A stretch of 64,000 bases of DNA from Macrostomum lignano (taxonomy: Eukaryota): positions 345,685 through 409,684 of the forward strand of contig NIVC01000920.1 of NCBI GenBank assembly GCA_002269645.1, read 5' to 3'. Within the stretch, counting starts at the first letter, position 1, and each line of letters starts with the position of its first letter. The translations under genes and the position numbers were made by a program. This document shows, piece by piece, positions 18,101-45,529 of this stretch. The notes beneath the pieces are model-generated. The model was not told the origin of the DNA and made no database searches. It worked only from the letters and a program-made list of their open reading frames with translations.

Positions 18101-20730
18101 CCCCCTGCAGTACACGCCGCGCCGCCTGCTGCTACACGAGAGCGGCCAAGCCGTGCTTATCGAGACTGAGCACAACGCCTTCACTGAGGACAGCAAGCAG
18201 CAGAAGAAGCGCCAGATTGCTCAGGAGATGCTGGAGCAGGCCGGAGCCGACGGTGACCGATCCGGTGACGCCCAGCTGGTCAGGGAGATGGCCGCCGCCT
18301 TCCTCAGCGAGAACCTGCCAGAGCCAGTGTTTGGCGCACCCAAGCCGGGCGCCGGCATGTGGGCCTCCGTGATCCGCGTGATGCGACCGCTCACTGGCCA
18401 GACTGCTCAGATTATCCGACTACAGCAGAATGAAGCTGCGCTCAGCATCTGCCTGTGCCGGTTCGCCTGCAACCCCATGGAATCCTACCTGCTAGTTGGC
18501 ATTGTCAAGGACATGACCCTGGCGCCCAGGTCCGTTGGCGGCGCCGTCCTGCGAACCTATCGGGTTGTTGGCGCTCTCGAAAGGCTGGACTTTCTGCACG
18601 AGACCGCTGTGGAGGATGCGCCTCAGGCTATGTGCCCCTTTCAGGTGCACGACCGCTTTTATCTACCTGGTTACGAATTGTACCTGTGTTGGGGAGATTT
18701 CTGGGAGAGGGGAGGAGAAGTTTTGGGAGATTTCTGGGAGAGGGGAGGAGAATTTGAGGGAGATTTCTGACTGTGTTGGGATTTGTGGGAGATTTCTGTC
18801 TGTTGGAATGGGATTTGTGGGAGATTTCCGTCTGTGTTGGGATTTATGGGAGATTTCTGTAAAAATAATTTATAATTTTTTCAGGGTCGCGTCCTGGTCT
18901 CAGTCGGTCGCGTGCTGCGAATCTACGATTTGGGCAAGCAGAAAATGTTGCGCAAATGCGAGACCAAAGCCCTGCCCAACTACATTGTGTCCGTAGCGGC
19001 TTTCGGCGACCGCGTGGTCGCTGCCGATGTGCAGGTGAGAAATTGTAGCACACAGTCTGAGCTTAGTAATATTAGTTCATTTCTTGCGTTCCGTAGCAAA
19101 TTATTCCATAAAACTCCAATTATATGCTGGATAAATATCAGTAGCTAATAAGAGTTTAATATTCTGTTCTATTGTTACATTAAAATATTTGATTAATATG
19201 TGTACCATCCTAAGCTGTCGACGTCTTTCTGTTAGAAGTAAGCCGATATGTATCGAAAACAGCATGATAAAGCAGTTTTAGCCATCTACTATTTTGAGAA
19301 GTCTATATGTATCGGAAACAATACGATAAAGCAGTTTTAAGCTCTTTGTTATAAGTCAGCCGAAATGTATCGAAAACAATATGATAAAGCAGTTTTTGTT
19401 TCTCGCTATTTTAAGCAAGCCGATATGTATCGAAATCAGAATGATAAAGCAGTTTTAGCCATGTGCTATTTTAAGTTAGCCGATATGTATCGTGAAACTA
19501 TTTCATTGAGGAATTTTAGTTTCCCTGTAATCCGATATGTCTCGAAAAACATGATAAAGCAGCTTTAGTTTCCCGCTATTTTAAGTAGGCCGATATGTAT
19601 CGAAAACAATATAACCAAGTATCTCAAAACCCTACGCCTGCAGGAGTCGGTCTTCTGGATGCGCTACCGAGCCTCGGACAACCAGCTGCTGGTGTTCGCT
19701 GACGATTCGCTGCCCCGCTGGGTGACCTGCCTGGCCATGCTGGACCAGTTCAGTGTCGCTGTCGGCGACAAGTTCGGCAACATCAGCGTCCTCCGCCTGC
19801 CGCCCGACGCTGTCGAAGACGACGCCGACGATGTTGGCGACCTGGGCTCGGCGCGCGGCTCCCTGTTTGACAGGGGCGGCCTGCTGGGCAGCTCCAGCCA
19901 GAAATGCGTGGCTGAGTGCACCTTCCACGTGGGCGAGGCGCTGAGCAGCCTGCGGAAGACCAGCCTGGTGCCCGGCGAGAACGACTGCCTGCTGTACACC
20001 ACCATCAGCGGATCCGTGAGTGCCGGCTTGGCTGCAGTCTGCCGCACCCCCCTGCCTGCACTACCAGATCCCCACTTTAAACTTCTGACATCATAGATTG
20101 CACTTTAAGCTCCTGGCATCTCAGATATCCCCACTTAAAGCTCCTGGGATCTCAGATCCCCACTTTAAGCTTTTGACATCCCAGATCCCCACTTTAAGCT
20201 CCTGACATCCCAGATCCCCACTTTAAGCTCCTGACATCCCAGATCCCCTCTTTAAGCTTTTGACATCCCAGATCCCCACTTTAAGCTCCTGACATCCCAG
20301 ATCCCCACTTTAAGCTCCTGACATCCCAGATCCCCTCTTTAAGCTCCTGGCCGACCAGATCCACACGCTCTGCTTTTGACACGGATTCCCACTTTTATCT
20401 ATCTAACATCCCAGACCCCTAGCGACAATTGAACCCTCCCTCACTCCTCAGGTGGGCATCGCGCTCCCCCTGGCCAGCAAGGAGGAGCACGACCTGTTCC
20501 AGCACCTGGAGCTGCACCTGCGCTCCCAGCACCTGTCCCTGCTTGGCCGGGACCACCTGCAGTTCCGGTCGATGTACTTTCCCAATCGGCGAGTGATCGA
20601 CGGCGACCTGTGCGAGATGTTCAACAACCTGGAGCCGGCCAGGCAGAAGGAGATTGCCCAGGAGCTGGATCGGACACCCAGCGAGCTGTCCAAGAAGCTG
20701 GAGGACATCAGGACTCGGTTCGCTTTCTGA
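9171..20730 (+). CDS. SF3B3: Splicing factor 3B subunit 3 (SAP130), 11 exons, 1235 aa
   Basis: Exons 9171-9396, 12187-12474, 14079-14485, 15362-15670, 15948-16268, 16617-17013, 17380-17786, 18093-18644, 18885-19034, 19644-20015, 20452-20730. All are GT-AG, phases are consistent and the total is 3708 nt. Hallmark peptides: [110 protein letters not shown] at 20884. Confidence 0.97.
10232..10816. mobile_element. Non-autonomous DNA transposon (MITE, 585 bp) with 8-bp target-site duplication (hAT/P-like)
   Basis: Terminal inverted repeats ccatagtcaggatgatgtacat / atgacatgatcctgactatgg. Identical flanking ccttgata at 10224-10231 and 10817-10824. Clustered subterminal (t)ggcgta motifs. Confidence 0.85.
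10870..11620 (-). mobile_element. Highly decayed RTE/Proto2-like LINE RT fragment in SF3B3 intron 1
   Basis: Minus-strand frames give [25 protein letters not shown], then (after a frameshift) [57 protein letters not shown]. This is the same RT-thumb region as the 7.4-8.3 kb element. Confidence 0.72.
12530..14045. repeat. C-rich minisatellite (cccagtcccagaatcc / ctacaatcc units), SF3B3 intron 2
   Basis: Tandem 15-17-bp units with higher-order repetition. Confidence 0.95.
14530..15325. repeat. Pyrimidine-rich minisatellite (tctccccgtctccctctcgtct), SF3B3 intron 3
   Basis: Tandem ~22-bp units; source of the long SPRLP/RREG ORFs. Confidence 0.95.
15770..15890. repeat. Short minisatellite (atgtactttagggtgagttg), SF3B3 intron 4
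   Basis: 4-5 imperfect copies. Confidence 0.75.
16375..16580. repeat. Minisatellite (gtcagtgtacattggggtaagga), SF3B3 intron 5
   Basis: About 8 imperfect 20-23-bp copies. Confidence 0.85.
17035..17230. repeat. Minisatellite (ctactgctgagtttctggttt(a/g)t), SF3B3 intron 6
   Basis: About 8 copies of a 23-bp unit. Confidence 0.9.
17835..18060. repeat. (AGAC)n microsatellite with taagacagac variants, SF3B3 intron 7
   Basis: Direct reading. Confidence 0.92.
18690..18860. repeat. Minisatellite (gggagatttct..), SF3B3 intron 8
   Basis: Repeated gggagatttctg units. Confidence 0.8.
19240..19610. repeat. ~60-bp tandem repeat (gccgatatgtatcgaaaacaatatgataaagcagtttt..), SF3B3 intron 9
   Basis: 6-7 copies at ~60-bp period. 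Confidence 0.88.
20080..20420. repeat. 29-bp minisatellite (gatccccactttaagctcctgacatccca), SF3B3 intron 10
   Basis: About 10 copies; the same family recurs at 26020-26140 and a derivative at 27530-28340. Confidence 0.92.
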
Positions 20731-21020
20731 GTCATTGTGACAAACTGTTTGACTCTGCGGACTTTTGTCCGAGTTAATTGTGCCGTTTTTCCTAATAACT
20801 TTTCTTATTCGTGTTGTCTGTTGAATTATTATTAATAAGTATAATGTTTAGTAATCATTATGTACAGTTTCCAGTCCGGTGGAAATAAACTTGCAGCAAT
20901 CCTAGCGCTCGCATTCAAACTGCCTGGCGTTTTTTGTTAAATTCAATTTCTAGGAATGAGCAGCTAATTAATAATAAATGCTGGTGCTGAGTATGCCCTG
21001 GTTTTTCTACTCTATTAAAG

Positions 21021-21769
21021 TATAGCTTTTTGCAGCCCATTTGGGCTTACGCGCATTGAATTTAATCCAAGATATGTTTGTCAAAGTAATGGAGCTTTTG
21101 TCTATGGTAGCAAGGCTGGCACAGCGGCATTTAATTTGGTCCAACAAGCATCAATTTGGTCCATTTAGTTCATTTGCAGCTCAGTCCCAGAATTGTGGAC
21201 CATATGCTAGGCTGTTGAACGGATGTCATTGGCTTGTGATCGAAGCACTCGACGGAGGTGAACACCCAAAGGACATTGCAAGGTTGCTGAATGTAAAAGA
21301 AAAGGTGGTTTACAGCATCCAGCAGCGCGTTGAAACTCTGCCGGCAGAGATTGCCTGCGAAAGGTTGGCAATCGCCAAGGAAAGTTGCTCGAGAGCCTCA
21401 GGTCCAACTGCTACTCGATGCAGTGGAGACGAACCCTTTGTTGACGTTGCCGAAATGCAGCAGAAGTTGAGGGAACAGCTCCAGTTGGTTATCAGATTTC
21501 GACTATCAGCAGAGCTCTGGAAAAGCAACTGAAAATTTTTGGTAGAGACGCTGACATTCCAGCGGTGCGAACAACCTGCAGACGGTTGAGAGAAGGCAAG
21601 AGTTTGTCCAATGACTCACGAGTGTTTGGACCAAATGGATGCTTGTTGGACCAAATTAAATGCCGCTGCGCCAGCCTTGCTACCATAGACAAAAGCTCTG
21701 TTACATTAGCAAACGTAACTTGGATTAAATTAAATGCGCGTAAGCCCAAATGGGCTGCAAAATGCTATA
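21021..21769 (+). mobile_element. Tc1/mariner-like non-autonomous deletion derivative (~750 bp, ~140-bp TIRs)
   Basis: tatagctttttgcagcccatttgggcttacgcgc..ccaacaagcatcaatttggtcca at the left end is the reverse complement of the right end (..gcgcgtaagcccaaatgggctgcaaaatgctata). TA flanks both ends. The interior retains an HTH-like peptide (LVIEALDGGEHPKDIARLLNVKEKVVYSIQQR). The element is absent from the paralogous segment at ~26730. Confidence 0.8.
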
Positions 21770-21970
21770 TTGGCAGTCCGCGGCAATGTGCAGCAATATC
21801 CGAGCAAAAGAGGCAATAATAACGACTATGAATTTTCATGAGATGTTGCAATCATCGTGGCATCAACTTTTCATTTAAAGTAAGCCATCACCAGAGAACA
21901 CACTAATCTATTTTATTTAACAATATTAATATTAGTTGTGGTCTCATCAGCAGGTGTATTAATATGCGGT

Positions 21971-23887
21971 CTATTCAGGCAGGTGCAGTACAAACTGAAT
22001 CTGGCCATGCGACTGGGTTTTCTCGCATTTGATGGGCTTTCCGCCAACCAGATCTTGCATGCACCTCTGTACCATGTTAGCCAGCTGACGAAAGTCTTCA
22101 ATGCTGCTCAAGTTGGTCTGGCGGATGCGGGGACAATCTTCGAGAACTTTGTGTAGAGCCTGCAGCATCCAGCCACCTGTGTCTGGCCGAGAGTAGGCCA
22201 TGTGCCCTGGACAGCTGGCGAAAAGCGCGGAGCAGCCCGGCACAAGACTTGGCAACGAGCTGCCAGCGGTTGCAGCGTCTTCAAAGCTGAAGACTTCAAA
22301 GCTGAAGCCTTCCAGCCCGGTGCTGAGCTCATCAACACTGTGCCGATAAGCGCCTCTGCAAGCCTGGTAGAAGACTCTGACGTGGCTGGCAATTTTTTTC
22401 AATTTGTTTACCAATTTCGGAAGTTCAACAACTGTTCCGTCTGAGAGGACAAAGCCGTCTTGAGATCCATGGGCCGATATGAACAAGTAAATTTTAATAT
22501 TTGATGACGCATTGGCTGAATGGCGTTTGCATGAATTTAATATGGCCTTGATGAAATCTGAATAGGTGCTTTTTAAGATATTATATCCATGCAGCATGTA
22601 GATGTTGTTTTTTATGCAGCCAAGCATCTCAGAAATTTCTCTGCAGTTCTTAAAATCGGCGTCGCAACCAGACCTATCCGGAAGATTACTCGTACTTCCT
22701 GAGGTGCTGTAGCTCTGCACAAACACGCCCACCGCTAACAGAGTGTTCTGTCCGGACTCTGCGCGTACATGTGCCAGCTCAGCGGGTTCCTCACCCACTA
22801 GCTGGGGTAAGTCTGTAATTTGTGTTTGTCTGTATCCTTGAGGATCCAAACCTCTAGGAATTCCAGTTCCCAGCAGAAATTCAAATCCTACAGCTTGCAG
22901 CAGGCGCACCATGTTGCTCACTCCATGTTGTTCGGTAATAGAAGTCACAGCCCGCTCCAAGTAAATATTTAGCGAATCCCAACCGGAAAATTGGGCATGC
23001 AGTGAATCTGTAGACCTCAAGGCCACTGAAAGCTGCGCTATGTTGAATCTGCTGGACCTGCTGCGGTCTGTGAAAAAGGAGGTTATGGCGAAAACTTAGA
23101 GTTACCCTACTGATAACCATAATTTCCACGACTTTTTAACACTTGGGGAATAGGCAAGATGAACAAGCAGTGCACTTCATCTCTACAAATGAATAAAGTG
23201 AAAACAAGTTAATCAATTACACACCGGTTAAGTGGAAGGCTTGACGTGGCCTTTTTGGGGGAAAATTTCCCAATAGACACGCACAGTTGAAATATTGTAA
23301 CTGACTCCAGGTCAGGCCGCCGATTCCTGGGAATGCAATCGTACAGGTCGCTTTCATGCACTATGCCGCCAAGAACAGGTCGCCCGTCTGCTGTTACCAA
23401 CAGAACATGAAGCAGCCACCTGCTGCCAGAATAATAATTGCATCGTCCAAGTTGTTCCTGACTGCATTTCGGTACTCCTCAAGGCTGCCAATCTGAATTG
23501 CCCGCAGTCTGACTGACGGCATTGATCGTAAGTTACCCAAGGTTTCAACTAGCGGGTGAGGGCTCAGAACAAGTAGTCGCAAAGTGATCGTACTGATTGA
23601 GGCGGCCTCAGCAGGGGGAAGTGAGGCGTCACTTTGCCGTTGCAGGCCTTGCGGCTCTGAAAGGTCATTCGACGTAAAGAAGACGTTGAAAACTGCATTG
23701 GCTTGCAAAAAGGAATCAACTTTTAGTTGCTGGGCAAAAGTCATGCGCACAAACCTGAATGATCTGGCAGCGGAGCAACATTGTCCTCTTCGGGATCGGC
23801 AGAAACGCTCGAGTTTCTGGTCCTGCCGATTGGTGCTGCAGCTTCCGGAGGCAAATTTTCTTTGTTAGAATGGTTTTGCTGGTCCAT
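21971..23887 (-). CDS. Caspase-like protease A (peptidase C14A) with N-terminal degenerate caspase-like domain
   Basis: The catalytic region reads DRSGCDAD, ISAHG..SDG, FYQACRG, ASCPGHMAYSRPDTGGWMLQAL. Proposed exons: 23887-23755 (MDQQNHSNKE..), ~23692-23420, 23390-~23222, ~23067-21971. Joining exons 2 and 3 needs a 29-nt GT-AG intron or a frameshift; the exon 3 donor is uncertain. Confidence 0.82.
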
Positions 23888-24609
23888 TTTAACTCTGGAT
23901 TGGAGCTGCAGATATTAAATACAATATTACTGTTATGGAGGCGGCAAAAAACATGAGTGTAAAGTAATTAGGAATTCCTTACTTAGCCTCTTTAAATGAA
24001 AAGGTGCATCATCTATGCTCATCTAAGGTTGCATTGTCAGGTATTTTGTAATAAAATAAAGCAAACTATTAAAACAATTTGAAACAAGGTACTCAGTATT
24101 TTTGATGGGTAGAACCATGTTGGGGTAGGAGTGAATGCACAGATGGCTGTCTCATGCCAGGTGAGGTTTCCAATGAACTTTTGCACCCTTAAGAATATTT
24201 AAGAATATTTTATATTATCCTGGCCTATACAGAATGAATGCATTTGGTTTGGTTGAGTCCACAGACCTAAAAATATAAAGACTATGCATTGGGAATTCTT
24301 ACAGTATCATAATAGTCATAAAAAGTGCTTCTTCTTTAGAAAAAAAAACAATTTTTGTGACAACCTTTCTTTTTCTAGCAAAATATTGTAGCAAAATGCT
24401 CAAAACTTCAAAGCCTTTTTCAAAGATTTTTGCTCTCATGAATACACAAATTTGCCAAATAATTTAAATTATCTGCATGCTTAGGTAAATCATCAGTAAG
24501 GTTCAAAATGGTCTAGATACATGCAAGAGGTTTGAACTCAGCAATTCGAGCTGTAAGAACTCCTAAACTTCTAAAAAATGTTCATCAATTTTTCAGCAAC
24601 AAGAGCCTT

Positions 24610-25890
24610 GGAAGTGCCTTGGCGGAGGGGTTGGGCGCCCACCCAACCAAAAAGAGACAGAGCGTGCACACGCGGCAGGGGCACACAGAAAGAGCTTGCT
24701 TGCATGGACACTACTACAAGTAAAGCCGGTTTGCTTAAGTGCCTTGACTTTTGACTCAGCTGCAGGGGCTTGCATCCGGATGCTGCGAGGAGGCGTTGCC
24801 GACCATTTCACTAACCCCTGGCGACCACGGGCAGCCGCGGTGCTGCGGTGTCGCGCAGGGAGATCCACGGAGGCAATTGGACTGACTCCCCAGACTGCTG
24901 CGACCTGCCCTACCTCTTTTTCGCAATCGTGTGCGCGCTAGCGCCCCCCGACCCTAGCGTCGTTGTAATGTATGTAATGTAATGTAGATCCACGGTGGTG
25001 CCGGTGCCTGCAGCGCGGTCCCCCTCAAAGTCCAGGAGGTGGATTGTCGCTCGCCCGGTAGCCCTTAGGTAGGCAGAGGTTCTCGAGCCTGAAAACATCG
25101 GAGAGGTCCGGGTGTGGGCCGAGGTAGATGAGCCTGTCCTGAGTAAAGGCGGGGTATCCACAGACACCGGAGATGCAGAAATTCTCGCTACGGATTTTTC
25201 CAAGTTTTTTAAACGTCTTCAAAAGCCATGACCGAGAAGTTCACGTTGATGTCTGCTGTTTATCCAGCATGAGCAAAACGTACAAAGTTGGCTGGGGCGC
25301 CCACTCAAACCCAGCCCTGCCGGCGGTGGGGTTGGGGCCACTCAACCAGAAAAGAACTCGTGCACAGCGGCGGGGACTTGACGGGGGGCCGAGTGCCGGT
25401 CACTTGCACTTAAGTGCCTAAGCGGTTACTGCCTGCTTACTGACTCAGCTGGGGGGCTCCGATCCGGATTGCGAGGAGGCGTTGCCGACCATTTCACTAA
25501 CCCCTGGCGACCAGGGCAGGCGGTGCTGCGGTGTGCGCGCAGGGGAGATCCACGGAGGCAATTGGACTGACTCCCCAGACTGCTGCGACCTGCCCTGCCC
25601 CTCTTTTTCGCAATCGTGTGCGCGCTAGCGCCCCCCGACCCTAGCGTCGTTGTAATGTATGTAATGTAATGTAGATCCACGGTGGTGCCGGTGCCTGCAG
25701 CGCGGTCCCCCTCTGGAGAGTCCAGGAGGTGGATTGTCGCTCGCCCGGTAGCCCTTAGGTAGGCAGAGGTTCTCGAGCCTGAAAACATCGGAGAGGTCCG
25801 GGTGTGGGCCGAGGTAGATGAGCCTGTCCTGAGTAAAGGCGGGGTATCCACAGACACCGGAGATGCAGAGAGGGCATTCCTCGCTACGGA
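24610..25890 (-). mobile_element. Tandemly duplicated ~580-bp unit containing a 3' fragment of an I/R1-group-like LINE with (ACATT)n tail
   Basis: Two similar copies (~24610-25195 and ~25310-25890). The minus strand encodes YPAFTQDRLIYLGPHPDLSDVFRLENL / AYLRATGRA, resembling the C-terminal end of non-LTR ORF2 proteins, followed by acattacattacatacattaca. Confidence 0.5.
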
Positions 25891-26168
25891 TGGCAGTGTA
25901 ATCCTGTCTAACAATGGCAGTGTAATCCACCAGAGGCGGCGGGCAGCGCGAATACACCGAGCAATGAGATGCGGCTCACCCCCTTATATCAAACTACTAT
26001 ACTTCTACCAGGTGTCAACTTTAAGCTCCTGGCATCCCAGATCCCCACTTTAAGCTCCAGGAATCCCAGATATCCCCAATTTAAGCTCCTGACATCCCAG
26101 ATATCTCTACTTGAAGCCCCTGGCATCCCAGACCCCTAGCAACAAGTAAACCCTCCCTCACTCCCCAG

Positions 26169-26446
26169 GCATCGCGCTCCCCCTGCTGGCCAGCAAGGAG
26201 CAGCACGACCTGTTCCAGCACCTGGAGCTGCACCTGCGCTCCCAGCACCTGTCCCTGCTTGGCCGGGACCACATGCAGTTCCGGTCGATGTACTTTCCCA
26301 ATCGGCGAGTGATCGACGGCGACCTGTGCGAGATTTTCAACAACCTGGAGCCGACCAGGCAGAAGGAGATCGCCCAGGAGCTGGACCGGACACCCAGCGA
26401 GCTGTCCAAGAAGCTGGAGGACATCAGGACTCGGTTCGCTTTCTGA
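26169..26446 (+). pseudogene. SF3B3: Duplicate of SF3B3 terminal exon, part of a ~26015-26885 segmental copy of 20290-21910
   Basis: Same exon with 6 substitutions (4 non-synonymous), loss of gtgg after the acceptor and a ctg insertion. The preceding minisatellite, 3' UTR, AATAAA and downstream flank are also copied. Confidence 0.9.
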
Positions 26447-26947
26447 GTCATTGTGACAAACTGCGGACTTATGTCCGAGTTAATTGTGCTGTTTTTCCTA
26501 ATAACTTTTCCTATTGTTTGTGTTGTCTGCTGAATTCTTATTAATAAGTATAATGTTTAGTAATCATTATGTACAGTGCAGTCCGGTGGAAATAAACCTG
26601 CAGTAATGCTAGCGCTCGCATTCAAACTGCCAGGCGGTTTTTTAAATTCAGTTGCTAGGAATGAGCAGTTAATTGATATTAAGTGCTGGTGCTGAGTATG
26701 TTGTGGCTTATTTATTTTTTCTCATCAGTTCAAGTTTGGGCAACCAGCTGCCTTAGCGATGTGCAGCAATTATGTGCAGGCAAAAAAGAAGCAGAAATAA
26801 CACGACTTTGATTTTTCCTGAGATGTTGCAATCTCTCTGGCATCAACTTTCTTTTATGCCATCACCATGAGAACACACGAATCAAGTTTAATTTTTCCAA
26901 TAGATTGACACTTGATTAATTTTCTTACAATAATAATTAATTTTTTT

Positions 26948-29455
26948 TCATACAGTATTATTAATATTAATAATATTACTCATTATACTATTGTATATTA
27001 TTGTCAATATTATTGGTACTTGTAACATTTTTATTATTATTAGCATTATTAATTTTTCAGCATAAGCTACTCGGGGGTAACACTTTTTTATTATTCCATT
27101 AAATTCATGATCAATTCCATATCCATCAATATAATTCAGCCTTTTTTGGATTTTTTGAGCTAAGCCAGCAATACTCGTATTGTTATTGAATAATCGGTAA
27201 CCGTAAAAACAGAGTACATACCGCACGGCCATCAGCAACCGGCTGCCGTCCTTCTCCTGCCATCGGCTGACGTAGCCGCTCTGGCTGCTGTAGATCACCG
27301 AGCAGTTGAGCCGCAGCTCCAGTGGCAGTGAGGCTCCGTCTCCAGCTTCACCGTCTCCATCGTCTCCAGAGTCGAGCGCTGGGTCCTCTTGCTTCACGAA
27401 ATGCTCTTTGGTGCCTCGACAAGCATGGTAAAATGTCAGAACCTCGTGCTGCCCTTGACAGTTGGTTCCAAAGCTCTTGATTCTTGCTTCGATCGGTCCC
27501 ATCCCCAGACTACCAGCCTCCATCACATTCCCAGATCCCGCAATATACTCACGCAATTTGACATCAAAGATCTGACATCCTCCTCATCACATCCCAGATC
27601 CCTACTCCCAATCCCTACTCCATCAAAGATACCCACTTCTCACATCCCAGATCCCCGCTCCTCACATCCCAGATACATCCCAGATACCCACTCCTCACAT
27701 CCCAGATCCCTACTCCAAACATCAAAGATACATCAAAGATACCCGCCCACTCCTCACATCCCAGATCCCTACTCCTAACATCAAAGATACCCGCTCCTCA
27801 CATCCCAGATCCCTACTCCTAACATCAAAGATACCCACTCCTCACATCCCAGATCCCTACTCCTAACATCAAAGATACCCACTTCTCACATCCCAGATCC
27901 CCGCTCCTCACATCCCAGATACCCACTCCTCACATCCCAGATCCCTACTCCAAACATCAAAGATACCCGCTCCTCACATCCCAGATCCCTACTCCTAACA
28001 TCAAAGATACCCACTTCTCACATCCCAGATCCCCGCTCCTTGTATCCCAGATACCCACTCCTCACATCCCAGATCCCTACTCCTAACATCAAAGATACCC
28101 GCTCCTCACATCCCAGATCCCTACTCCTAACATCAAAGATACCCACTCCTCACATCCCAGATCCCTACTCCTAACATCAAAGATACCCGCTCCTCACATC
28201 CCAGATCCCTACTCCTAACATCAAAGATACCCACTCCTCACATCCCAGATCCCCACTCCTTACATCCCAGATCCCCACTCCTCACATCCCAGATCCCCGC
28301 TCCTCACATCCCAGATCCCCGCTCCTCACATCCCCACTTTTAGCTTGCGATTGTAGATCGTACTGTTCATTGTTATATTCCTAAGGCATTGAGACATTCA
28401 CAAGTGCCACTTACTTTGACCTGCTTCCAGAGCATTTAGCGACTGATGATTATCCTTGACTTGTGACACTCCTTTGCGCTTATTGCCGATTAGAAATCCG
28501 CTGTGGAATTTAGAATTCAAATGGCATTCAATCTCTTTTTTGCACAGTATTAAAAGTTTTACCATCAAAACTACGTGCTACATGTATCAGATATCAAAGG
28601 AGATTCGCCGGAAGGCAGCAACGCAGGCACACGGAAGGGGCGACTTAAATGATTTTTGTTTGAGAAGGCGCACAACAAAAAGTTGGCCTGTGTTCTTGAA
28701 TTTCGTGTGCCTGCGTTGCTTCGCTCCAGCAATGCAAAAAAATGTCAGATGGATTCCACCTTTGATAATTTTGCTGCTAATTAACTCTGCTGACAGAATT
28801 CTCCCAGCAAAAAAGTTTTGGCAAGACCTTAGAGTCAGCCTCACGCTTTAAGTTGAACATGTTCCTAACGCATGAACAATAATAAGCTTCGTCGCTGGCG
28901 TTTGGGGCATTGTGCACGAAGGTATGACGAATGCGCTTCCATTTTTAGAACTGACGCTTGCACCCAAATGAGACCTACTCTGATTACAAAAACTTTCTGC
29001 ATAGTCTTCTCAGTCTCCTCTAACAAACTGCATTCCCTGCTCACGAGGGGAACATGAAGTTGAATGGCCCAAGAGATTTTCTAAAAGGTTTGGTCTTCCA
29101 AATTTTACTATTTCAATTGGGCCTTAAAAAAGAATGAAGTACACTTTCGAGGGTAGGCTACAAGAAAGTCTTGAAAATTCCCATGTTTCCTACTATACTC
29201 ATGCAGCTTAAGCAACAAATGATTTTCCCCCATCAGAAGTACTCACGCTGTATTCGTTTTTTTCTGTTGCTCATTGTGCTTAGTAGCTTCAAACTCGGCT
29301 CGAAGCTCTTCAAGCGATCGAAGCCGCCCGACATCCACCAATTCCTGGGGCCGCTCCGACGCCACTTTGTGACGCCGAAGCGGCCCCTGAAAGTTTGAAT
29401 CGTTATTGGAGTTAAGCCTTATAGGAGTTTGTTCGGTTTGCTCAGATTTGCTCAT
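26948..29455 (-). pseudogene. Caspase-like gene C, degenerate/interrupted
   Basis: The 3' ORF has TFYHACRG and SVIYSSQSGYVSRWQEKDGSRLLMAV (p10-like). Upstream pieces LVDVGRLRSLEELRAEFE (29455-29248, ending at a gtgagt donor), KLIIVHA, FFAGRILSAELI, GIHLTFFC and GFLIGN match the N-terminal domains of paralogues A and B. No SAHG segment was found and I could not build a continuous frame. Confidence 0.68.
27530..28340. repeat. Minisatellite (ctcctcacatcccagatcc / ctaacatcaaagatacc) inside caspase-like gene C
   Basis: Tandem ~19-40-bp units related to the SF3B3 intron-10 family (catcccagatcc core). Confidence 0.92.
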
Positions 29456-29526
29456 AAAAAAGGGTAAAGTAGAATGAACGCCAGTCAGGCTTATTTAAAT
29501 TGTATGTAGGGTGAGCGCTCAAGCAG

Positions 29527-32500
29527 TGTGCATTACGGGGTTGGCCTCTTTCCATTTCTCTGTCATTCTATATCGGCGTACATTCAACTCTCTAACCATG
29601 CACGCGCCAACCCCCATTGAAATACACGCATCGGCATTGACTCGTGATTAGGACTTTGCTATCGGTATCGATCCAAACAAATTCACACGACTTATCAGAG
29701 TTCCTACAGTGGCGTCGCAAACACACAAACCTACGCGAGGGCAATGGCCACTAGCTACGTTTCTCTGCCCCCACCAGAGCCGTTCTCAATTATCAGCGAC
29801 CCTCACAATGCTGGCAAACGCTGGAGCGAGTGGTCAGCACGCTTTCAAGATTGCATTGACGCTTCTGCCCCCGCCAGCTGAAGGGAATCAGACCACACTC
29901 GACAACACGCTAAATGCTTTAAAGGATTTCTTTAGAGAGAAAGAACATCGTCTTCGCTCGATACCAATTTAGGAACTGCATCCAGCAACAAGGAGAGAAA
30001 ATCGAAGCTTGGTATTCACGAATGCGTGCTTCAGCCGAGGCTTGTGAGTTCGAAAATCTGAAGGACTCCCTTATCAGAGACCAGCTTGTAGCGACCTGTA
30101 CATCAGACAAGTTGCGACGGCGGCTACTCCAAGAGACCAACATTTCCTTGGACGAAGCCCTGCGAAAAGCGAGAGCGTTTGAAGCAGCGGAGGAGCAGGC
30201 ATCGGAGATGGAGTAGACAGATTCGCAGGTGGCAAGCGTTACAAGATCCAACAAGCCCCGGATGAACGGACGCGAAGCATCCAGCACCGCCAGCAGCAGC
30301 AGCAGCAGCAGCAGGCAGTCTCAACAGCAGACATGCTACCGCTGCGGAGAAAAAGGTCACTCTACATGCGACTTGGCGAGAGGAAAAATCTGCCTCAACT
30401 GCGGAAAAACCAATCACCTAGCCAAAGCATGCCGCAAAGCACGCTCGAGTAACAACACGATTCGATCGCAAGTCAGCGCTAACCTAGTGAGCACCTCACC
30501 GGAGCCAAACCTCGACACTAGCATTGGCGAAGACGTTTTTCGGCCTGTGCAAATACAGCAGCTTCCCAGCAGACGTCTCGTTAACTGTCGAAATCGGAGA
30601 CTGTAAGCTACCGATGATGCTGGACAGCGGAGCCAGCTGCAGTATCATGAGCATCAAAACATTCCGACAGCTGGCCGATCAGCGAATTCGAACCACCAAG
30701 GTAAAAGTTCATGCATATGGAACGCCCGAACCTCTCAAAATCATCGGTACTGCGAGCTTAGGCATCAAAATAGGTACCGCTAGCGCAACTGTGCCCTTTC
30801 ACGTTCTCGACGGCGACGGTCTAACGATACTCGGACGCCAAGCTGCCTTTGAGCTAGGAATCCTGCTTATCCAGCGGCCAATTCTCAGCCAGACAGAAGA
30901 TGTCAACTCCAACGTCAAAGCAGCCGAGGGGTATAAAAGCCAGAACATTCAGGACATCTTGCATCAGCACAAAAAAGTATTTGATGGAATCAGATGCATC
31001 AAAGGCGTGCAGGTCGAAGTTCAGCTGTCGGACAACGCGGCCCCGGTGTGTCATCCGCTAGCCCGAGTTGCGGCGCATCTCCGAGAATCTGTCGTCAAGG
31101 AGCTGAAAGACCTAGAAAGGCAAGATATCATCGAGCCAGTAAAAGGACCCTGCGCGTGGGTGGCCCGCATGGTAGTATTGTAGTTCCAAAGGACGATGGC
31201 GGAGTCCGAATCTGCCAGGACCTGCGCAACCTAAACGCCCATGTCATCCCTGAAAAACAACAAATACCGACATTGGACGAGGTCACCGAGGAGATGTCCG
31301 GAGCCAAGCTGTTCAGCGAGCTAGATATTCGTAAAGCCTTTTACCAGATCCCAGTGCACGAGAACAGCCGACACCTTTTCACATTTAGCATTTAGCCGCT
31401 CGGACTAATGCGTCTCAAAAGACTGAGCATAAGTTTTACGAATGCATCCGAAATCCTACAAAGAGTCATGCTCGGCGTGCTCAGCGGAATCGATGCTGTT
31501 CGATGGTCCACGACGATGTCATCGTATACGCTTCGGACCTGCAAGAGCACTGCAAAAGACTCGAAGCCTGTCTGCAGCGTCTCGAAGAATTCGGCATTAC
31601 GCTAAATAAAGAAAAGTGCAAAATCGCCGTCCCCGCTGTCGAGTTCCTAGGAATGCACCTATCTGCAAAAGGAGTGCAGCCTGCTAATGAGAAGACCGAA
31701 GCTATGAAGCACTTCAGACAGCCGACCAGCGTATCCGAAGTTCGCTCGTTCCTAGGCACAGCAAACTTTCTGGCGAAATTCATACCTAACTTCGCTGATG
31801 TCTCCGCACCGCCGCGCAAATTAACAAAGAAAGGGGAGACATTCGAGTGGACTGCCAGCCACTCAAAAGCCTTCGAAGAGATCAAATCGATCATCTGTAA
31901 GGAAGAAACTCTTGCCTTTTTCGACCGCAAACACCAAACAGAGCTTATAGTTGACGCATCGCCAATCGGACTTGGTGCGATTCTGACACAAAAGCAGCCG
32001 GACGGAATCTGTAGACCAGTGGCTTACGCCAGCAGAGCGCTGTCACAAGTTGAGCAGCGGTACGCCCAGATTGAGCGGGAGGCGCTGGCTATCAAATTTG
32101 GCTGCTTAAAGTTCGAAAACTACCTGGCTGGTGGTCCAAGTTTTACAGTGGTGACCGACCACCGACCGGTCCTGCCACTCTTCAGACCGGGATCCCGCCC
32201 GCCACCACGGATTGAACGCATGGTTCTTCGGATTCAACACCTCCGCTTCAACTTGGTGTACAGACCGGGGCCGTCCAACCCAGCTGATCTACTAAGCCGC
32301 CAATCGCTTCCAGAGCTCAGGAAAAACTGGGGAGAGGTCTTCGACACCGCATACGTCAACGCTGTATCAACAGGAGCCGTGCCAAAAGGTTTCAGTGCGG
32401 AACAAATTCGAGACGCAGCAAAGACAGACGCAGGAATTCAAGCCGCGCTGTGCGCCATCAAGACAGGAAACTGGAACACACACGACTCGGTACAACGCGC

Positions 32501-33452
32501 ACTAAAAGCCATCAGCAGCGAACTGACAGAAGACAATGGAATGCTACTTCGAGGAGACCTCATTGTCGTCCCAGAGTCACTACGGAGACCAATTTTGCAA
32601 CTGGCCCACACCGGACATCTTGGTGCCAATCGAACACTCAAGCGTCTGCAGACCAAAGTCTGGTGGCCAGGGATGCGCAGCGATTGTGATGTCTTCGTGA
32701 AATGCTGCATTCCTTGTCAAGCGTCGGACACTCGTACAAATCAGACACCTTTGAGACCGACAAAGTTACCCGAGGGTCCCTGGCAGCAACTTGGAATGGA
32801 CTTCTTCGGACCTGTCCAAGGCCAAATGCTTCTAGTTACTACGGACCTGTATTCTAAATACCCGGAGATCAACATTTTGAGCTTGACAACAGCAGAGAGT
32901 GTAAAACCGCATCTGAGGAGATCAACCTGCCTCTGCCGGCCAACCTGCCTCTGCCGGCCAGCCTGTCTCTGCCGGCCAGCCCGCCGGCCAGAGGGACTTC
33001 CTTGCCTTCAGGAGGCGTCCGCGTGAGGCTACAGAGGGGCCGAAAATTTATAAATGACAAGCGCTGTTTGAATCTCAAACTGAACTGACAACAACAATAT
33101 TATTTTTATTCCCGTCAACTGATTTACTGACAATAACAATATTTTATATTTCCGTCAGCTGTTATTTTTATTCCTCATCATTTTTTCCTTAGGGGGGAAG
33201 AATCGTAGGCTTGCGCCTTAGCAGTTCTCAATGTTTACTAGCTATTGAGTATTTGTGTGCATTACGGGGTTGGCCTCTTTCTATCTCTCTCTGTCATTCT
33301 ATATCGGCGTAAATTCAGCTCTCTAACCACATGCACGCGCCAACCCCCCATTGACTAATATTTAAATACACGCATCGGCATTGACTCGTGATTAGGACTT
33401 TGCTATCGGTATCGATCCAAACTAACTCACACGGCTTGTCAGAGTTCCTATA
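29527..33452 (+). mobile_element. Ty3/gypsy LTR retrotransposon (two-CCHC-knuckle, Mag-like), decayed
   Basis: LTRs at 29527-29708 (ends CA) and 33256-33452; PBS-like tggcgtcgc at 29710; PPT aggggggaagaa at 33191. Gag from ATG 29744 (LPPPEPF..WSEWSARF; CYRCGEKGH..C, CLNCGKTNHLAKAC), protease LDSGAS, RT (FYQIPV, HDDVIVY), RNase H (VDASPIGLGAIL), integrase zinc finger (AHTGH..CIPC) and the start of the core (GMDFFGP), truncated at ~32910. Multiple stops and frameshifts. Confidence 0.93.
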
Positions 33453-33456
33453 GTAT

Positions 33457-33570
33457 GTAGGGTGAGCGCTCAAGCAGTTTCTCTCTGTGCCGTTGTCGGT
33501 GTGTTGTTGTGATACCGATGTCGTTGCCTAACAACAGTACAGAGAAAAACTGCTTGAGCGATAACCCTAC
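33457..33570. repeat. 114-bp fold-back element with 32-bp inverted arms
   Basis: gtagggtgagcgctcaagcagtttctctctgt versus the reverse complement of acagagaaaaactgcttgagcgataaccctac (29/32 match). Confidence 0.8.
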
Positions 33571-34644
33571 CCAGCGGAAACTATTCGATGCTCTGCATTT
33601 TTGTAAGCACTGGAATTTTACTTACATCGAAGCGAAAAAAGCTTGTACATAGTTGCATGAAACATGAGCAGTCTGACAATTCAAAAAATTCACATTTAAT
33701 ACGCTCGTAGGTAATGCTTTCAGCGGTTTAGAGACTCGCCTTGCAAGAACCCTCTACAGAAAGTCCTCTGTCCCAGCATGGTCAGTGCGATCGTGTCGCC
33801 TTCAATTGCCTGTGACCTCGAGATTACCAGCTAAATACACTTAATTGTTTATGGCATGGCTTGATGATAAGCCTTAATCTCGATCCGGATTAGCTGATTT
33901 CTGCCTTTTCAAATTCTCCCTGCTTGACTCTCGCTGTCTTCTCGATCTTAGCTACATGTATGGGAGCCAGCTCTAAGCTACCTTGAGGCTGGTCAATATC
34001 TGACAGCTGAGTGCGGGCCGAGACCAGAGCGCTAATAACTGAAGTGGCTGTCTATCTATGAAGAGAGTATCGCACACGGGTGTTAGTAGTCTTTTTTAGT
34101 TTTTTTAACTATACAGTTCATACAATAATTATGAGAATTTCATCTTATACTACTGATAGAAATATTTATTCAAAGCATCCAAGTAAGAAATTTAAGAAGT
34201 AGCCAAAATAAAAATTACATAAAATAAAAAAATTAGGCAAAGCGTCATTATGCCAAATTTAGCAACAAAAGTTTACCGGTACTTCAGCCCAGACTATCAA
34301 AAGCAGTGTACACCAGTTTAAAAATAACTGTGAAAAAATACTAGTATGATACTCACAAAAAAGAAAGAGGAGACTGGGTTAGCGAATTGCTATTTTTATT
34401 ACACGGAAGCATATTTGATAAATTTATATAATAAGCAAACATATAAACGCTTATTAAACTGAATAAAAACAGATTAGATTAGCTGAATAATTCACATGAC
34501 GCGGTAAAAAATTTACAATAGTACAATGTGAATAAAAACATTTTTTTAAATTGCAATGCAAAAATATAATACAAATTTGTGTACGAGTATAGGAGAAAAA
34601 ATTGGCAGCTCTGTTCAAATAAAATGCTCATTAAAGCCACCCAA

Positions 34645-36537
34645 TCAGTCCGGTTGACCAGTGCATTCAGGGTTGTTGAGCTCCAGCTGGGCCAGCTCTT
34701 TCGTTGCAGCAGTTGTCCCTCTGGCTCCGCCACCCAAGCCAGTCTCGATGACGAAGTTCTCAAATCCCTGATTCGCGCTGTACTGCGTCTGCACGTAGGC
34801 CGTGTAGGATTTGCCTCTTTGTCGAAGGGGAACGATGCCCAGCTTCAAGAGCTGTCGCAGCTCAGCTTGCAACAAGTCTGCCAGCCTCTTGACAGTGATT
34901 CTGCCACGGCGTCTGACAACATTCAGCAGCGCTCGCGGCATCCAGCTGCCTTTGTGTTGATTCCTGTACGCCTCATAGCCCGCCATGCTGGCGAAGATGG
35001 CAGCAGCGGCCGCCATCTCGGGCGGCAGGGTGCAGCCGGCGGCTTTCGGCGGGCTGACAAATCCCAGGCAGCAAGCAGAAGCCGGTCGGTGATTCTCCCC
35101 GGCCTGAGCAGCGTGAAACCGCGGGCCCCGGCACGCCTGGTAAAACAGCAGGACAAAGCCAGCCAGGTCTTCCACTTTCTTCATCAGATCCTTAATAGAG
35201 ACAATTTTCCCGTCCGATGTTCGAATCCCAGCCTCGCAGCCGTGAGCAGAGATGGCGACAAACAGGCAACGAGGCGTGGTCGACTTGTTACGCCAGTCCT
35301 GAGCGTAACTATCCACAAATTGCAGAGCTTTCTCGGCTGACACGTAGCCATCGTCAGGGCAGAGAGAGCGCACGTTCTCTGATGAACAGCCGAGCTGCCC
35401 CGCAATTTCATCAAAGTTCTCCTTGTCCATTTTAAAACCAGCCCTGTCTTTATCTGTGCTGTCTTTTTCGTACTTGCCGATGATAACAGAAACAAAGGCA
35501 TTCGGCTCCGCCCACTCATAGGAAGGTTTCGAGTTCAGTGCGTAAAGCTGCTCAAGAGGATTGCCTTGGTCGTCAGACACCGTAGGAATCGGCGGAGCTT
35601 CGGCATGCTCGACACTGGCTGCGACCTCAGCTAACTTGCCGCTCGGGACGCCTGACATTCGAAGTTGGGAACACCTGCAGCAGTTGGCAATCCGGTCAGC
35701 CAACCTGTCTGTCGTTACTGACTTGTCCAATGCCTGATGCACATCCTGCCACTGCCAGTTTGGCTCCCCAAAGTTTGGCTTGAGTAGGTAGATCTCGGCA
35801 TTGCAGAGCGTCGGACATTTCGGAGCTTCATCGTCACCGCTACCAGTCTTGCCAACACCCTGTTCGACGCTGCCACTGTACACTTCTGCGCATTCTGTCG
35901 GACAGAGTAAGTAGGCCACTCGAATCTTGATAGGTTCCGAGCTCTGTCTCGAATACAGCGGCTTGTACAGCTCGTCCTCTGTCACAATTTTGCCGCTAAG
36001 CACTGGCTGCATGCAGTTGGCAGTGACGTCAATCTGGTGAACAATCAACGCCTCGCAAGCTTTTTGTGACTTCACGTCAGACATGAACTCTTCAACTGCC
36101 TGATGGTAGCTCTCCACCGAATCGGGCTTTTTAAAATCGAAGTCAAACCGGTTGTTGCGTGATTTTCTGCTCGGAAACTCGACTTGGCTATCTGAGTGGT
36201 GAGTGTCGAGAAACAGCACTGACACTGTCTCAGAAGTCTCGAATTGCGGCAGCTGCGGACAGCTCTGTTGAGTTCTGCTGCATTGATTCTGGTCATTGCC
36301 AGACTCTGAAATGAATTGGAAATTATCATACAATGGAAGTCTTGCCAATGTTAAAAAATAGAATTATCCAGGATGCATTGTAACTTTTCACTTACCTTCA
36401 AGTTCGCAGTCTGGCACTGATGGAGGCCCAACTGCATCTTCTTTGGATGCAACCGCAGTTGCACTGCTCAGCTTCTCATCTGGCTTCACTCCTGACATTG
36501 AATCCTGCAGAGAAGAAAATGACACACTTTCAGACAT
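34645..36537 (-). CDS. Caspase-like protease B (~600 aa) with N-terminal degenerate caspase-like domain
   Basis: Exons 36537-36396 (MSESVSF..; donor gtaagt) and 36305-34645 (acceptor atttcag), phase 1, 1803 nt in total. Motifs: LYALNSKP, DRAGFKMD, VAISAHG..SDGKIV, FYQACRG (Cys codon 35131-35133), FASMAGYEAYRNQHKGSWMPRAL. The start could alternatively be the ATG at 36498. Confidence 0.92.
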
Positions 36538-37922
36538 GGCTAATCTTGGAATTAACTTAACTTTCTAGGCTTTAGCAGCAGAATTTATACAGTTGTGATC
36601 TTGTTTTGCTTTGGTTAGAAAGCTATTTCTAATATTGAGCATTTGCTTTATAATTATATAATTATATAAAATGTACAATGTCTATTTGTATAGCTATATA
36701 TTTATAGCTATTAGCTATTATTTACAAAGAACTAAGGTGTTGTTGCATTATTACCAATGACTCACAACATAATGTGCACATTGATCTATAAATAAGTACT
36801 TTTAGTTGCAATGTAATACACTTTTTGAACATTATAGACAAGTTCCTTGTTATATTTATAAATTATAATCACCTATCCTCCAGCTCTAGAAATTACTCAT
36901 GGGCAAAGGTATACAAGGATGTTAATATGTAGAAGCCAGACTTGATGTGTGTATTTTAAGAAAATAATTAGACAACTTAAGAGATGAAAATCCACTAAAT
37001 AATCCCTTTTATCCTTGCATACTTTTATAGACAGTATAATAAATCTGGGGTCTAATTTTGGTTAATTTTGTAAACACCTTTTTAAAATGTGTATTTATAA
37101 CTTACCAATGCTAAATCCGTAGGCAACATCGGTGCATTGTGGTGATTGTCCTGATTGATACTCATTGTCGCTGTTAGTGTGATTTTATTTAGAGTCAGAG
37201 TTTAATTTCAAACTCGACTTTGTATTTTTGAACTAAGATGCTGGCATTTAAAACTGTTCTATTTTTTCTGTTTTAGTAACGGCCGTAGTAAAACAATTTT
37301 AACTCTATTGTATTTTTTTTGGTAGCAGCAACAATACACAATACACAAATATTATTTATTTTTAAACTGTAAGCCTGACTTAAATGTATTCGATTGTCCA
37401 AACTTTTTATTACGACGAAATTGCCGAATATTCGTACATACAGAAACGCATGGACTATATCGCATAGATACAACTTTGCCAATTTTTCACGTTCCCCAAG
37501 ACGTTTTTACATCTCTGCGTCTTAAGATATAGTCCTGAAGAGTACTGAACATTATACTAAGTATAAAATTCGATTCAAGCAGACTAAATGAAACTACTAC
37601 TCTACTGGGCGACTGATCGAGTGCAATGAATAATTTCTGCCCTCCAGATAAAAGGTTTTAGAAAGTCGAGTCCATCATGCATAATGTTTCAAAACAGATA
37701 TAACTGCTTTACACTCATATCCTTCCAAGTTTATTATTCAAGAAGCAGGCATATTGCATTGATTTATTGGCATAGAACGGAGATTTGGAGATTTGGCAGA
37801 TGACAAGATTTTTAATGAAATTCAAACTCAGCAACATTAATAATACGAGGTCCAACATGCAAATACATACTTATATTACAGTACAAAATTATAGGCTCGG
37901 TTGAGTTGCCAAGCTACAGTTG

Positions 37923-43804: not shown

Positions 43805-44995
43805 CTCCTGTCCTGGTTCCTGTCCCCCACTGTCCTGTCCTCTCCTGTCCTCTCCTGTCCTGTCATTTCCTGTCCTGTCCTGTCCTGTCCTGTCCTGTCC
43901 TGTCCTGTCCTGTCCTGTCCTGTCCTGTCCTGTCCTGTCCTGTCCTGTCCTGTCCTGTCCTGTCCTGTCCTGTCCTGTCCTGTCCTGTCCTGTCCTGTCC
44001 TGTCCTGTCCTGTCCTGTCCTGTCCTGTCCTGTCATTTCCTGTCCTGTCCTGTCATTTCCTGTCCTGTCCTGTCATTTCCTGTCCTGTCCTGTCCTGTCC
44101 TCTCCTGTCCTGTCATTTCCTGTCTTGTCCTCTCCTGTCCGGTCCTGTCCTGTCATTTCCTGTCCTGTCCTGTCCTGTCCTGTCCTGTCCTGTCATTTCC
44201 TGTCTTGTCCTCTCCTGTCCGGTCCTGTCCTGTCATTTCCTGTCCTGTCCTCTCCTGTCCTGTCCTGTCCTGTCATTTCCTGTCCTGTCCTCTCCTGTCC
44301 TCTCCTGTCCTGTCATTTCCTGTCCTGTCCTGTCCTGTCCTCTCCTGTCCTGTCATTTCCTGTCTTGTCCTCTCCTGTCCGGTCCTGTCCTGTCATTTCC
44401 TGTCCTCTCCTGTCCTGTCCTGTCCTGTCCTGTCCTGTCCTGTCCTCTACTGTCCTGTCCTGTCCTGTCCTGTCCTCTCCTGTCCTGTCATTTCCTGTCT
44501 TGTCCTCTCCTGTCCGGTCCTGTCCTGTCATTTCCTGTCCTGTCCTCTCCTGTCCTGTCCTGTCCTGTCCTGTCCTGTCCTGTCCTGTCCTCTGCTGTCC
44601 TGTCCTGTCCTGTCCTGTCATTTCCTGTCCTGTCCTGTCCTGTCATTTCCTGTCTTGTCCTCTCCTGTCCGGTCCTGTCCTGTCATTTCCTGTCCTGTCC
44701 TGTCCTGTCCTGTCCTGTCCTGTCATTTCCTGTCCTGTCCTCTCCTGTCCTCTCCTGTCCTGTCATTTCCTGTCCTGTCCTGTCCTGTCCTCTCCTGTCC
44801 TGTCATTTCCTGTCTTGTCCTCTCCTGTCCGGTCCTGTCCTGTCATTTCCTGTCCTGTCCTCTCCTGTCCTGTCCTGTCCTGTCCTGTCCTGTCCTGTCC
44901 TGTCCTCTCCTGTCCTGTCCTGTCCTGTCCTGTCATTTCCTGTCCTGTCCTCTCCTGTCCTGTCCTGTCCTGTCCTGTCCTGCCCTGTCCTCTCC
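43805..44995. repeat. (CCTGT)n pentanucleotide satellite with catttcctgt and tccggtcc variants
   Basis: About 1.2 kb; source of the CPVLS ORFs. Confidence 0.97.
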
Positions 44996-45529
44996 TCCTT
45001 TCGTCTCTCCTCTCTTTTCTCGATCCCTTCTAACTTCTTTCTTCACTTCTCTTCCCTTCTTAGTCAGCCGCCACCATCATCCCTTTACCCCTGGGCCCGC
45101 TGCCAGTCTGCAGTCTGCTGGTCTCACCCCCCGTGATTCTCACACCCGTGCGTGCCAGACTTCGAAGAGCTCATTCTGCAGTCCTGACCCTTGCCCAGCT
45201 ACTCAACAACAGTTCCATCTCGTCCAACTCAAAGCCGTGCTCAACCGGGAGTACGCACAGATGGCATTCGCTGTGTCTGCGCGTACCAAAACGTGATTAA
45301 ACCCAAATCCCGTCGGGTATTGCCGGATTGAGGGGAGGGGTGAACTGCTAGAAACCCAAAGCGACTCAGGAGGAGACCAGAAACACAGAGGAAAGCGAAC
45401 TTGGGCTGGAAGCGTCGGTTGCTGTTCGCTCTTCCCTCCCGCGTCTCGTCTCTCTCGGATGTCGCGGATCCCCGCCTCCCGCCCCAAGTCGAAAATCGCG
45501 CATCCAGTCATCCTTTGCTGGCCTGCCTG

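Follow-up and report, generated by a model that had tools for sequence, protein, structure and literature searches.

A tandem cluster of three diverged caspase-like genes, one canonical and two substituted at S1-pocket positions, in the flatworm Macrostomum lignano

What kind of protease is encoded by three clustered caspase-like genes of the free-living flatworm Macrostomum lignano, and how far have they moved away from canonical caspase specificity? The genes, here called A, B, and C, all lie on the minus strand within ~15 kb of a 64,000-nucleotide (nt) stretch of nuclear DNA (the window; positions 345,685 to 409,684 of the 409,684-bp contig NIVC01000920.1, assembly GCA_002269645.1). Caspase specificity for Asp at the substrate P1 position depends on Arg179, Gln283, and Arg341 in the S1 pocket (caspase-1 numbering), while the catalytic dyad is formed by His237 in the SHG motif and Cys285 in the QACxG pentapeptide. 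An initial annotation of the DNA described three same-strand paralogues as prodomain-less, lineage-specific, rapidly diversifying proteases with non-canonical substrate preferences. The arrangement of the genes is borne out, and a search for a fourth caspase-like copy in the window by tblastn found none. It is likely that the cluster consists of three old, diverged paralogues of a Macrostomum-restricted, weakly constrained subfamily of true caspases (MEROPS C14A). In such a scheme the locus, lying between SF3B3 and a TALE homeobox gene, would occur in the M. lignano assembly as several copies, homeologous or duplicated. B would be a complete cysteine protease, while the S1 pockets of A and C would be altered or lost. 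Evolution between homeologs would be near-neutral, and lesions in individual copies would reflect the weak constraint acting on each copy where the genome is highly redundant.

Membership of the caspase family holds up in searches against Pfam. Peptidase_C14 is matched by the A open reading frame (ORF) at 21971-23026 (5.7e-11, 43 bits) and by the B ORF at 34645-36348 (1.2e-13, 51.8 bits). The C ORF of the window (26948-27556) has no match to Pfam C14; an intact C from a sister contig (a 290-amino-acid (aa) ORF) scores 23.9 bits, above the curated threshold of 21.4 bits. Among solved structures a profile built from the family has its highest score with caspase-3 (41 bits at 8.6e-10); CED-3, caspase-7, and caspase-2 come next. 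There is no metacaspase among the 60 best of 147 matches in the PDB, all of which are caspases or CED-3. A metacaspase or paracaspase (C14B) identity was rejected on this ground, as well as on the caspase-type QACRG and GSW motifs; the Glu found in C at the position of Arg179 is not kept in the distant C copy P0008.

Close relatives were found in the same species only. The ORFs of the cluster are 88–100% identical to M. lignano proteins. An exhaustive HMMER search of 1.84 billion representatives with a joint A, B, and C profile recovered seven proteins at E<=1e-30 and 12 at E<=1e-10, the top ten all from M. lignano. These ten comprise A-type, B-type, and C-type proteins together with P0007 and P0008, the weakest being P0010, a truncated model (9.4e-21, 90.5 bits); seven of them, from P0009 upward, score 145–577 bits. 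Below them, at no more than 68 bits, come generic caspases of oribatid mites, a snail, and metagenomes. Word-indexed protein searches, one of them with a profile, returned M. lignano proteins only. A 49-aa cluster mate, P0160, comes from marine metagenomes and was set aside as irrelevant. The drop from more than 90 to at most 68 bits agrees with the description of the family as lineage-specific.

The members are also distant from one another. A and B share 27% identity over 322 residues (E 5e-19), while C can be aligned to them solely from the active-site pentapeptide onward, that is, over the C-terminal half (E 1e-5 and 3e-3). Identity among the paralogues is 22–30%, and identity to any non-Macrostomum caspase is ~17–25%.

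At the residues that define the S1 pocket, the three genes part ways. The register was taken from HMMER alignments to caspase-3 and Sf-caspase-1 and from a 13-sequence MAFFT alignment, in which the p20 and p10 segments can be aligned; both represent linear alignment rather than the three-dimensional pocket. All motifs quoted in the initial annotation are present. The caspase domain of B (34846-35487) contains KDRAG, with the Arg179 equivalent (35451-35425), ISAHG (35253-35239), QACRG (35139-35125), and GYEAYR with Arg341 (34980-34963). B and its relative P0007 share R-x-G-x-x-x-D (Arg179), SAHG, QACRG, and GYxAYR (Arg341), and B also has the GSW motif. In A (caspase domain 22058-22687) the dyad, Arg179, and Gln283 are kept in PDRSG (22681-22655), ISAHG (22480-22466), and QACRG (22366-22352). 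GHMAYSR (22207-22187) places Ser at the Arg341 position with Arg at +1, as originally noted, and this is reproduced without an indel by both the alignment to caspase-3 and MAFFT. In C-type proteins Gln283 is replaced by His (HACRG) and Trp340 and Arg341 are swapped (G-Y-V-S-R-W, with Trp at 341 and Arg at -1). Intact C copies keep the dyad (ISSHG, HACRG), and their E-H-G-Y-K-A-D segment puts Glu at the Arg179 position, replaced by Pro in P0008. The C of the window keeps the Cys motif in FYHACRG (27433-27413), followed by GYVSRW (27277-27260), while its His-bearing segment is deleted.

These differences suggest unequal roles within the cluster. With all five canonical residues in place, B is predicted to act as an ordinary caspase directed at Asp, and it is probably active and Asp-specific. 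Its intersubunit linker, QACRGPRFHAAQAGENHRPASACCLGFVSPPKAAGCTLPPEM, contains no Asp, unlike the linkers of A and C; therefore B is probably activated without classical autoprocessing at the linker. For A and C we infer a weakened or altered S1 pocket, such that P1-Asp would be bound poorly, the preference would be shifted, or the proteins would serve as non-catalytic regulators. The substitutions at S1 positions in A and C agree with the proposal of non-canonical preferences, which would not apply to B.

Gene B is the only member intact in the window. The initial annotation drew the limits of all three genes too narrowly, as B extends to 37165, A to 23887, and the first exon of C begins at 29455. 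The three exons of B (37165-34645, 609 aa) have canonical GT-AG borders, in agreement with the NCBI protein PAA74861.1 (P0161, 609 aa), which is located on the window's own contig. Exon 1 (37106-37165) starts with the ATG at 37165, encodes MSINQDNHHNAPMLPTDLAL, and ends at a GTAAGT donor. Exon 2 (36396-36504), with a CAG acceptor and a GTAAGT donor, encodes DSMSGVKPDEK...PDCELE. Exon 3 (34645-36305) runs to the stop codon and contains, intact, an N-terminal conserved domain, a linker, the caspase domain, which begins at about residue 330 of 609, and a C-terminal tail.

A second B-like gene, P0007 (542 aa; 43–52% identical), lies at 10001-11629 of locus L003 (NIVC01000975.1). It keeps every canonical residue and the N-terminal domain. 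The gene has a single exon and sits within an intron of an IP3-receptor gene (annotated as 2914 aa) that is encoded on the other strand. P0007 may be a retrocopy that has retained the N-terminal domain and catalytic residues.

Gene A (21971-23887) has its first exon at 23887-23756, further N-terminal exons down to ~22998, and a main exon ORF at 23026-21971. In intact copies the protein is ~550 aa long with the caspase domain forming the last ~260 residues, from about residue 290. In the window two insertions disrupt the reading frame of the N-terminal part and leave the caspase domain intact. These are +2 nt (AA) at 23438-23439, a frameshift leading to a stop at ~23394, and +4 nt (TGCA) at 22998-23001, both of which are absent from the corresponding A copies in NIVC01000482.1 (locus L005) and NIVC01000172.1 (locus L004).

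Gene C is the most damaged. Exon 1 (29246-29455) encodes MSKSEQTEQ...KKTNTA and exon 2 (28416-28499) encodes GFLIGNKRKGVSQVKDNHQSLNALEAGQ; from these two small exons comes an N-terminal extension of only ~95 aa. The remnant of exon 3 (26948-27556) is preserved from the active-site pentapeptide onward. At the lesion site (27476-27606) 130 nt stand in place of ~486 nt in the loci L002 (NIVC01000482.1) and L001 (NIVC01003266.1). The window copy is therefore short of ~355 nt, and the half of the caspase domain from beta1 to the catalytic His (ISSHG) is gone. This missing half was not found elsewhere in the window by tblastn or in a three-frame reading of 26900-29600, and an 11-aa match at 27597-27565 proved to be merely the translation of a minisatellite. 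P0010 was considered as independent confirmation of the truncated allele and rejected, as its junction matches the intact allele and the gene predictor chose an internal acceptor. The last intron of C holds a 22/44-bp minisatellite (27583-28334) that directly abuts the deletion.

The same locus can be followed through other contigs of the assembly. The sister contig NIVC01000482.1 (L002/L005) is 99.3–99.9% identical to the window, NIVC01003266.1 (L001) is ~93% identical, and NIVC01000172.1 (L004/L009) is ~94.5% identical over A. Between the window and the sister contig the lesions are reciprocal: A and C are intact in the sister contig and B is deleted, while the window has an intact B with A and C damaged. 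The lesion in the sister B is a clean, frame-breaking deletion of 158 nt (L002 11803; window 35362-35205) that removes the His region. Most copies keep open reading frames of 290–615 aa. In both the sister B and the window C, the deleted segment spans the His-bearing region.

Rates of change set the cluster apart from its neighbours. The ratio of non-synonymous to synonymous divergence (dN/dS) was estimated by the Nei-Gojobori method between homeologous copies, with 2–4 sequences per gene. It is 0.87 for B (window vs. L001; synonymous divergence, dS, 0.063), 0.76–0.87 for A (window or L005 vs. L004; dS 0.034–0.036), and 0.67–0.78 for C (L002 or L001 vs. L004; dS 0.27–0.32). One further pair of C copies, L002 vs. 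L001, gives 1.69 at a dS of 0.016, based on 21 substitutions (3 synonymous and 18 non-synonymous). In comparison, dN/dS is 0.11 for the clearly coding exons of SF3B3 (dS 0.053) and 0.19 for the TALE homeobox exon (dS 0.036). The non-synonymous excess over these two genes is significant (Fisher p 8e-4 to 4e-6). In B the ratio is ~0.87 in the N-terminal and caspase halves alike. Fast evolution of the family, as first proposed, is supported, but in the presence of disabling lesions relaxed constraint explains it at least as well as adaptive diversification.

Against this rate stands the conservation of the functional core. The SHG, (Q/H)ACRG, and p10 GY..(R)..GSW motifs are shared by paralogues that are only 22–30% identical. 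Together with the long open frames in most copies, these motifs argue for weak constraint on each copy in a redundant genome and for a family that is functional in the long term.

Adaptive diversification would account for the high rates differently, with positive selection acting on substrate-binding loops and producing new P1 or P3 preferences, for example in immunity or reproduction. The significantly raised dN/dS would fit, as would the fixation of S1 substitutions between homeologs, with GHMAYSR in A and in its copy A'' on NIVC01000172.1, and HACRG and SRW in C and its copies C' and C''. However, the ratio in B is uniform rather than regionally concentrated, no pair with adequate counts exceeds 1, and the disabling lesions argue for weak constraint. 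Selection of this kind is an unlikely explanation, although it is the best placed of the alternatives.

A somewhat smaller probability is given to decay: after polyploidisation A, B, and C, with their copies, would have lost all or nearly all function and be drifting towards pseudogenes, their motifs being leftovers. Ratios of 0.7–0.9 (and 1.7 for one C pair) are what such relics might show, and three different disabling lesions occur in two copies that are 99.5–99.9% identical. The C-type S1 residues also differ between C and C'' (Glu vs. Pro at Arg179), and a literature search for the gene identifiers of the cluster found none of them and no expression evidence. Nonetheless, ORFs of 290–615 aa remain open in most copies despite a dS of ~0.3 between C and C''; the His, the Cys, the pentapeptide, and the p10 region are conserved among the divergent paralogues; and P0007 retains all canonical residues and the N-terminal domain. 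A third alternative, in which the three genes are nothing more than the flatworm orthologues of apoptotic caspases already known as initiators or effectors, with the standard specificity, is highly improbable: the best PDB match of the profile is caspase-3 and B has all canonical residues, but the best score outside M. lignano is 68 bits and identity there is ~17–25%, CARD and DED are absent, A and C are without the canonical S1 residues, and a lophotrochozoan caspase survey (PMC11463336) lists a separate M. lignano CARD caspase, PAA59014.1, treated as a caspase-2-type initiator.

A weakly constrained, Macrostomum-restricted caspase subfamily therefore remains the preferred reading, with several points weighing against it. 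The S1-pocket predictions follow from linear alignment of the sequences. The lesions could be assembly errors, as the window and the sister contig share one long-read assembly. The lineage-specific label depends on database sampling, in which coverage of other Macrostomum species and of most free-living flatworms is thin, and the position closest to caspase-3/7 reflects small differences in score. A dN/dS near 1 combined with several disabling lesions could mean that the whole family is decaying.

The divergence of the copies is itself uneven. For the same contig pair (L002/L001 vs. L004/L009), C has a dS of ~0.3 and 65% aa identity, while the adjacent A has a dS of ~0.035 and 95% aa identity. 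This might reflect gene conversion affecting A, or a C paralogue of older origin. No B-like gene was found within 10 kb upstream of C'' in NIVC01000172.1.

The N-terminal regions hold the second question raised by the locus. The label prodomain-less proved incorrect, as A and B carry 280–330 N-terminal residues including a shared alpha/beta domain of ~110 aa. In B this domain lies at 35890-36228 (TVSVLFLD ... VTANC ... YLLCPTEC) and is common to A-type proteins and P0007. The N-termini of A-type and B-type proteins and P0007 align with invariant residues (e.g. ...Y..V.....D...H....T.....P.L.G.IV.E..L...). The absence of CARD and DED stands, as neither was detected when full-length B, P0001, and the A models were scanned against Pfam, and no death-fold or other Pfam domain turned up in the N-terminal parts even at E values of up to 10. 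By eye, no N-terminus of the three resembles a signal peptide, and nothing in the analysis bears on the suggested roles in immunity, regeneration, or secretory processing. The caspase survey reports a kinase-prodomain caspase in addition to the CARD caspase in M. lignano and no other unexpected prodomain detected in platyhelminths (PMC11463336).

An AlphaFold2 (AF2) model of the first 290 residues of B, built from a 5-sequence alignment, has a mean predicted local distance difference test score (pLDDT) of 44, rising to 70–85 over residues 68–130. It contains a beta-beta-alpha-beta-beta-alpha-beta unit at residues 41–150, an alpha/beta fold rather than a six-helix bundle. With Foldseek against the PDB the top matches of this model are the p20 chains of caspase-1, -11, -2, and CED-3, at marginal scores (best E 1.2e-3, probability 0.98, template modelling score 0.36–0.42 per target). 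An hhalign comparison of the N-terminal alignment with the caspase domains of the family itself scores 29.8 (E 0.0015, probability 17%). It pairs VTAN(C)/VTADG with SAHG, GKIVTEDEL with DGKIVSIKDL, and YLLC with YQAC. This score is not reached by the reversed alignment or by any of 360 controls with shuffled columns or blocks (maximum 24.3).

It is tentatively proposed, at somewhat short of an even chance, that the N-terminal region of ~110–200 aa in A- and B-type proteins is a degenerate p20-like pseudo-caspase. The catalytic His would be replaced by Asn in the B-type and Asp in the A-type, with a Cys kept after the strand equivalent to beta4. Other comparisons gave no such signal. Against generic caspase profiles of 6 and 83 sequences the hhalign match is colinear but not significant; the N-terminal profile matched nothing in the PDB or Pfam; and hmmsearch with the hidden Markov model of the family's caspase domain found no signal in the N-terminal sequences above shuffled controls. 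A second AF2 model, of an A-type protein (pLDDT 43), gave generic alpha/beta matches and no caspases in Foldseek. If the proposal is true, A and B would be single-chain tandems of a pseudo-caspase and a caspase, in which the dead domain could be a built-in dimer partner or regulator. This would represent pseudo-enzyme regulation in cis within C14A, a cis version of the FLIP(L)/caspase-8 pair and an analogue of separase.

The cluster is bordered at low coordinates by the 3' end of SF3B3 (CPSF_A domain, plus strand), which ends at ~20730, and at high coordinates by the TALE homeobox gene (38147-38815, minus strand). Within the latter, the ORF that holds the homeobox exon contains an 18/36-bp tandem repeat (38585-38795, minus strand) upstream of the homeodomain, read as RVTLRK / VTLQDIG, and the array varies between copies. 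A second copy of the last SF3B3 exon and its 3' flank lies just downstream of C (20278-20995 vs. 26018-26700), with 87% identity overall and 98% in a 278-nt core. Similarly, the 3' flanks of A and C (21783-21918 vs. 26756-26893) share 76% identity, which extends to within ~50 nt of each stop codon. A and C were accordingly considered as recent tandem duplicates, but their coding DNA cannot be aligned, so the similarity of the flanks gives no date for the genes.

Repeats and mobile elements also occur in the region. Between SF3B3 and A, 143-bp inverted repeats at 21021-21163 and 21627-21769 (92% identical) bracket an ORF at 21041-21532 with weak helix-turn-helix matches. This looks like a DNA-transposon remnant that breaks the duplicated flank. 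In the A–C intergenic region, blocks of 114 and 151 nt each have a second, 100% identical copy at a spacing of 687–690 bp (24913-25179 and 25600-25869), and the ORFs overlapping them have no Pfam match. Between B and C lies the degenerate body of a long terminal repeat (LTR) retrotransposon (~29700-33030, plus strand), split over several frames, with CCHC gag, aspartyl protease, reverse transcriptase, RNase H, and integrase zinc domain parts. This body is present in the near-identical sister contig and absent from the homeolog L001, in which B' and C' are only ~1.8 kb apart. Many long minisatellite arrays with periods of 15–49 bp also occur, at 12535-14057, 14572-15326, 43806-44996, 60363-64000, and elsewhere, including the array in the last intron of C; these arrays account for the GC-skew spikes in the composition profile. 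A 29-bp array at the 3' end of SF3B3 (20064-20349) is related to that of the C intron.

The cluster is of interest because little is understood of the caspase repertoires of animals other than vertebrates, flies, and nematodes, and M. lignano serves as a model for regeneration and stem cells, where the control of cell death matters. One canonical and two S1-altered members with a novel shared N-terminal domain offer a natural series for the drift of caspase specificity and regulation. Near-identical copies with complementary null lesions in a polyploid-like genome also matter for gene counts and for the design of RNA interference and CRISPR experiments.

In comparison with known systems, the effector caspases (caspase-3/7 and Spodoptera Sf-caspase-1; C14A) share with the family the Peptidase_C14 signature, SHG, QACRG, the R-x-G-x-x-x-D loop, and GSW, and share with B the full S1 triad. 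They differ in having a short prodomain instead of the N-termini of 280–330 aa in A and B, and identity to them is ~17–25%. The linker of B without Asp, the Arg341 to Ser change in A, and in C the Arg179 to Glu or Pro and Gln283 to His changes with the Trp340/Arg341 swap are further departures. The best-scoring matches outside Macrostomum (60–68 bits) are multi-caspase-domain proteins from the oribatid mites Oppiella nova (P0011) and Medioppia (P0013) and the snail Batillaria (P0012). Unlike the N-terminal domain of A and B, their repeats are plainly caspase-like and mostly keep SHG and xxCRG, and they show no orthology to A, B, or C. With two or three caspase domains per chain, they nonetheless demonstrate that tandem caspase architectures exist in invertebrates.

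If the N-terminal domain is a dead caspase (His to Asn or Asp), A and B would resemble cFLIP(L)/caspase-8, in trans, and separase, in cis, in pairing a pseudo-caspase with an active caspase. Unlike these, A and B have no DEDs and no sequence relation to separase (C50), and only a p20-like core is detectable, with homology weakly supported. The lophotrochozoan caspases with non-canonical prodomains described in PMC11463336, the ANK-caspases of parasitic flatworms and the M. lignano kinase-prodomain caspase, are alike in having a flatworm N-terminus that is neither CARD nor DED. The N-terminal domain of A and B differs from these prodomains in having no Pfam match at all. Flatworm caspases with such N-termini illustrate lineage-specific prodomain invention.

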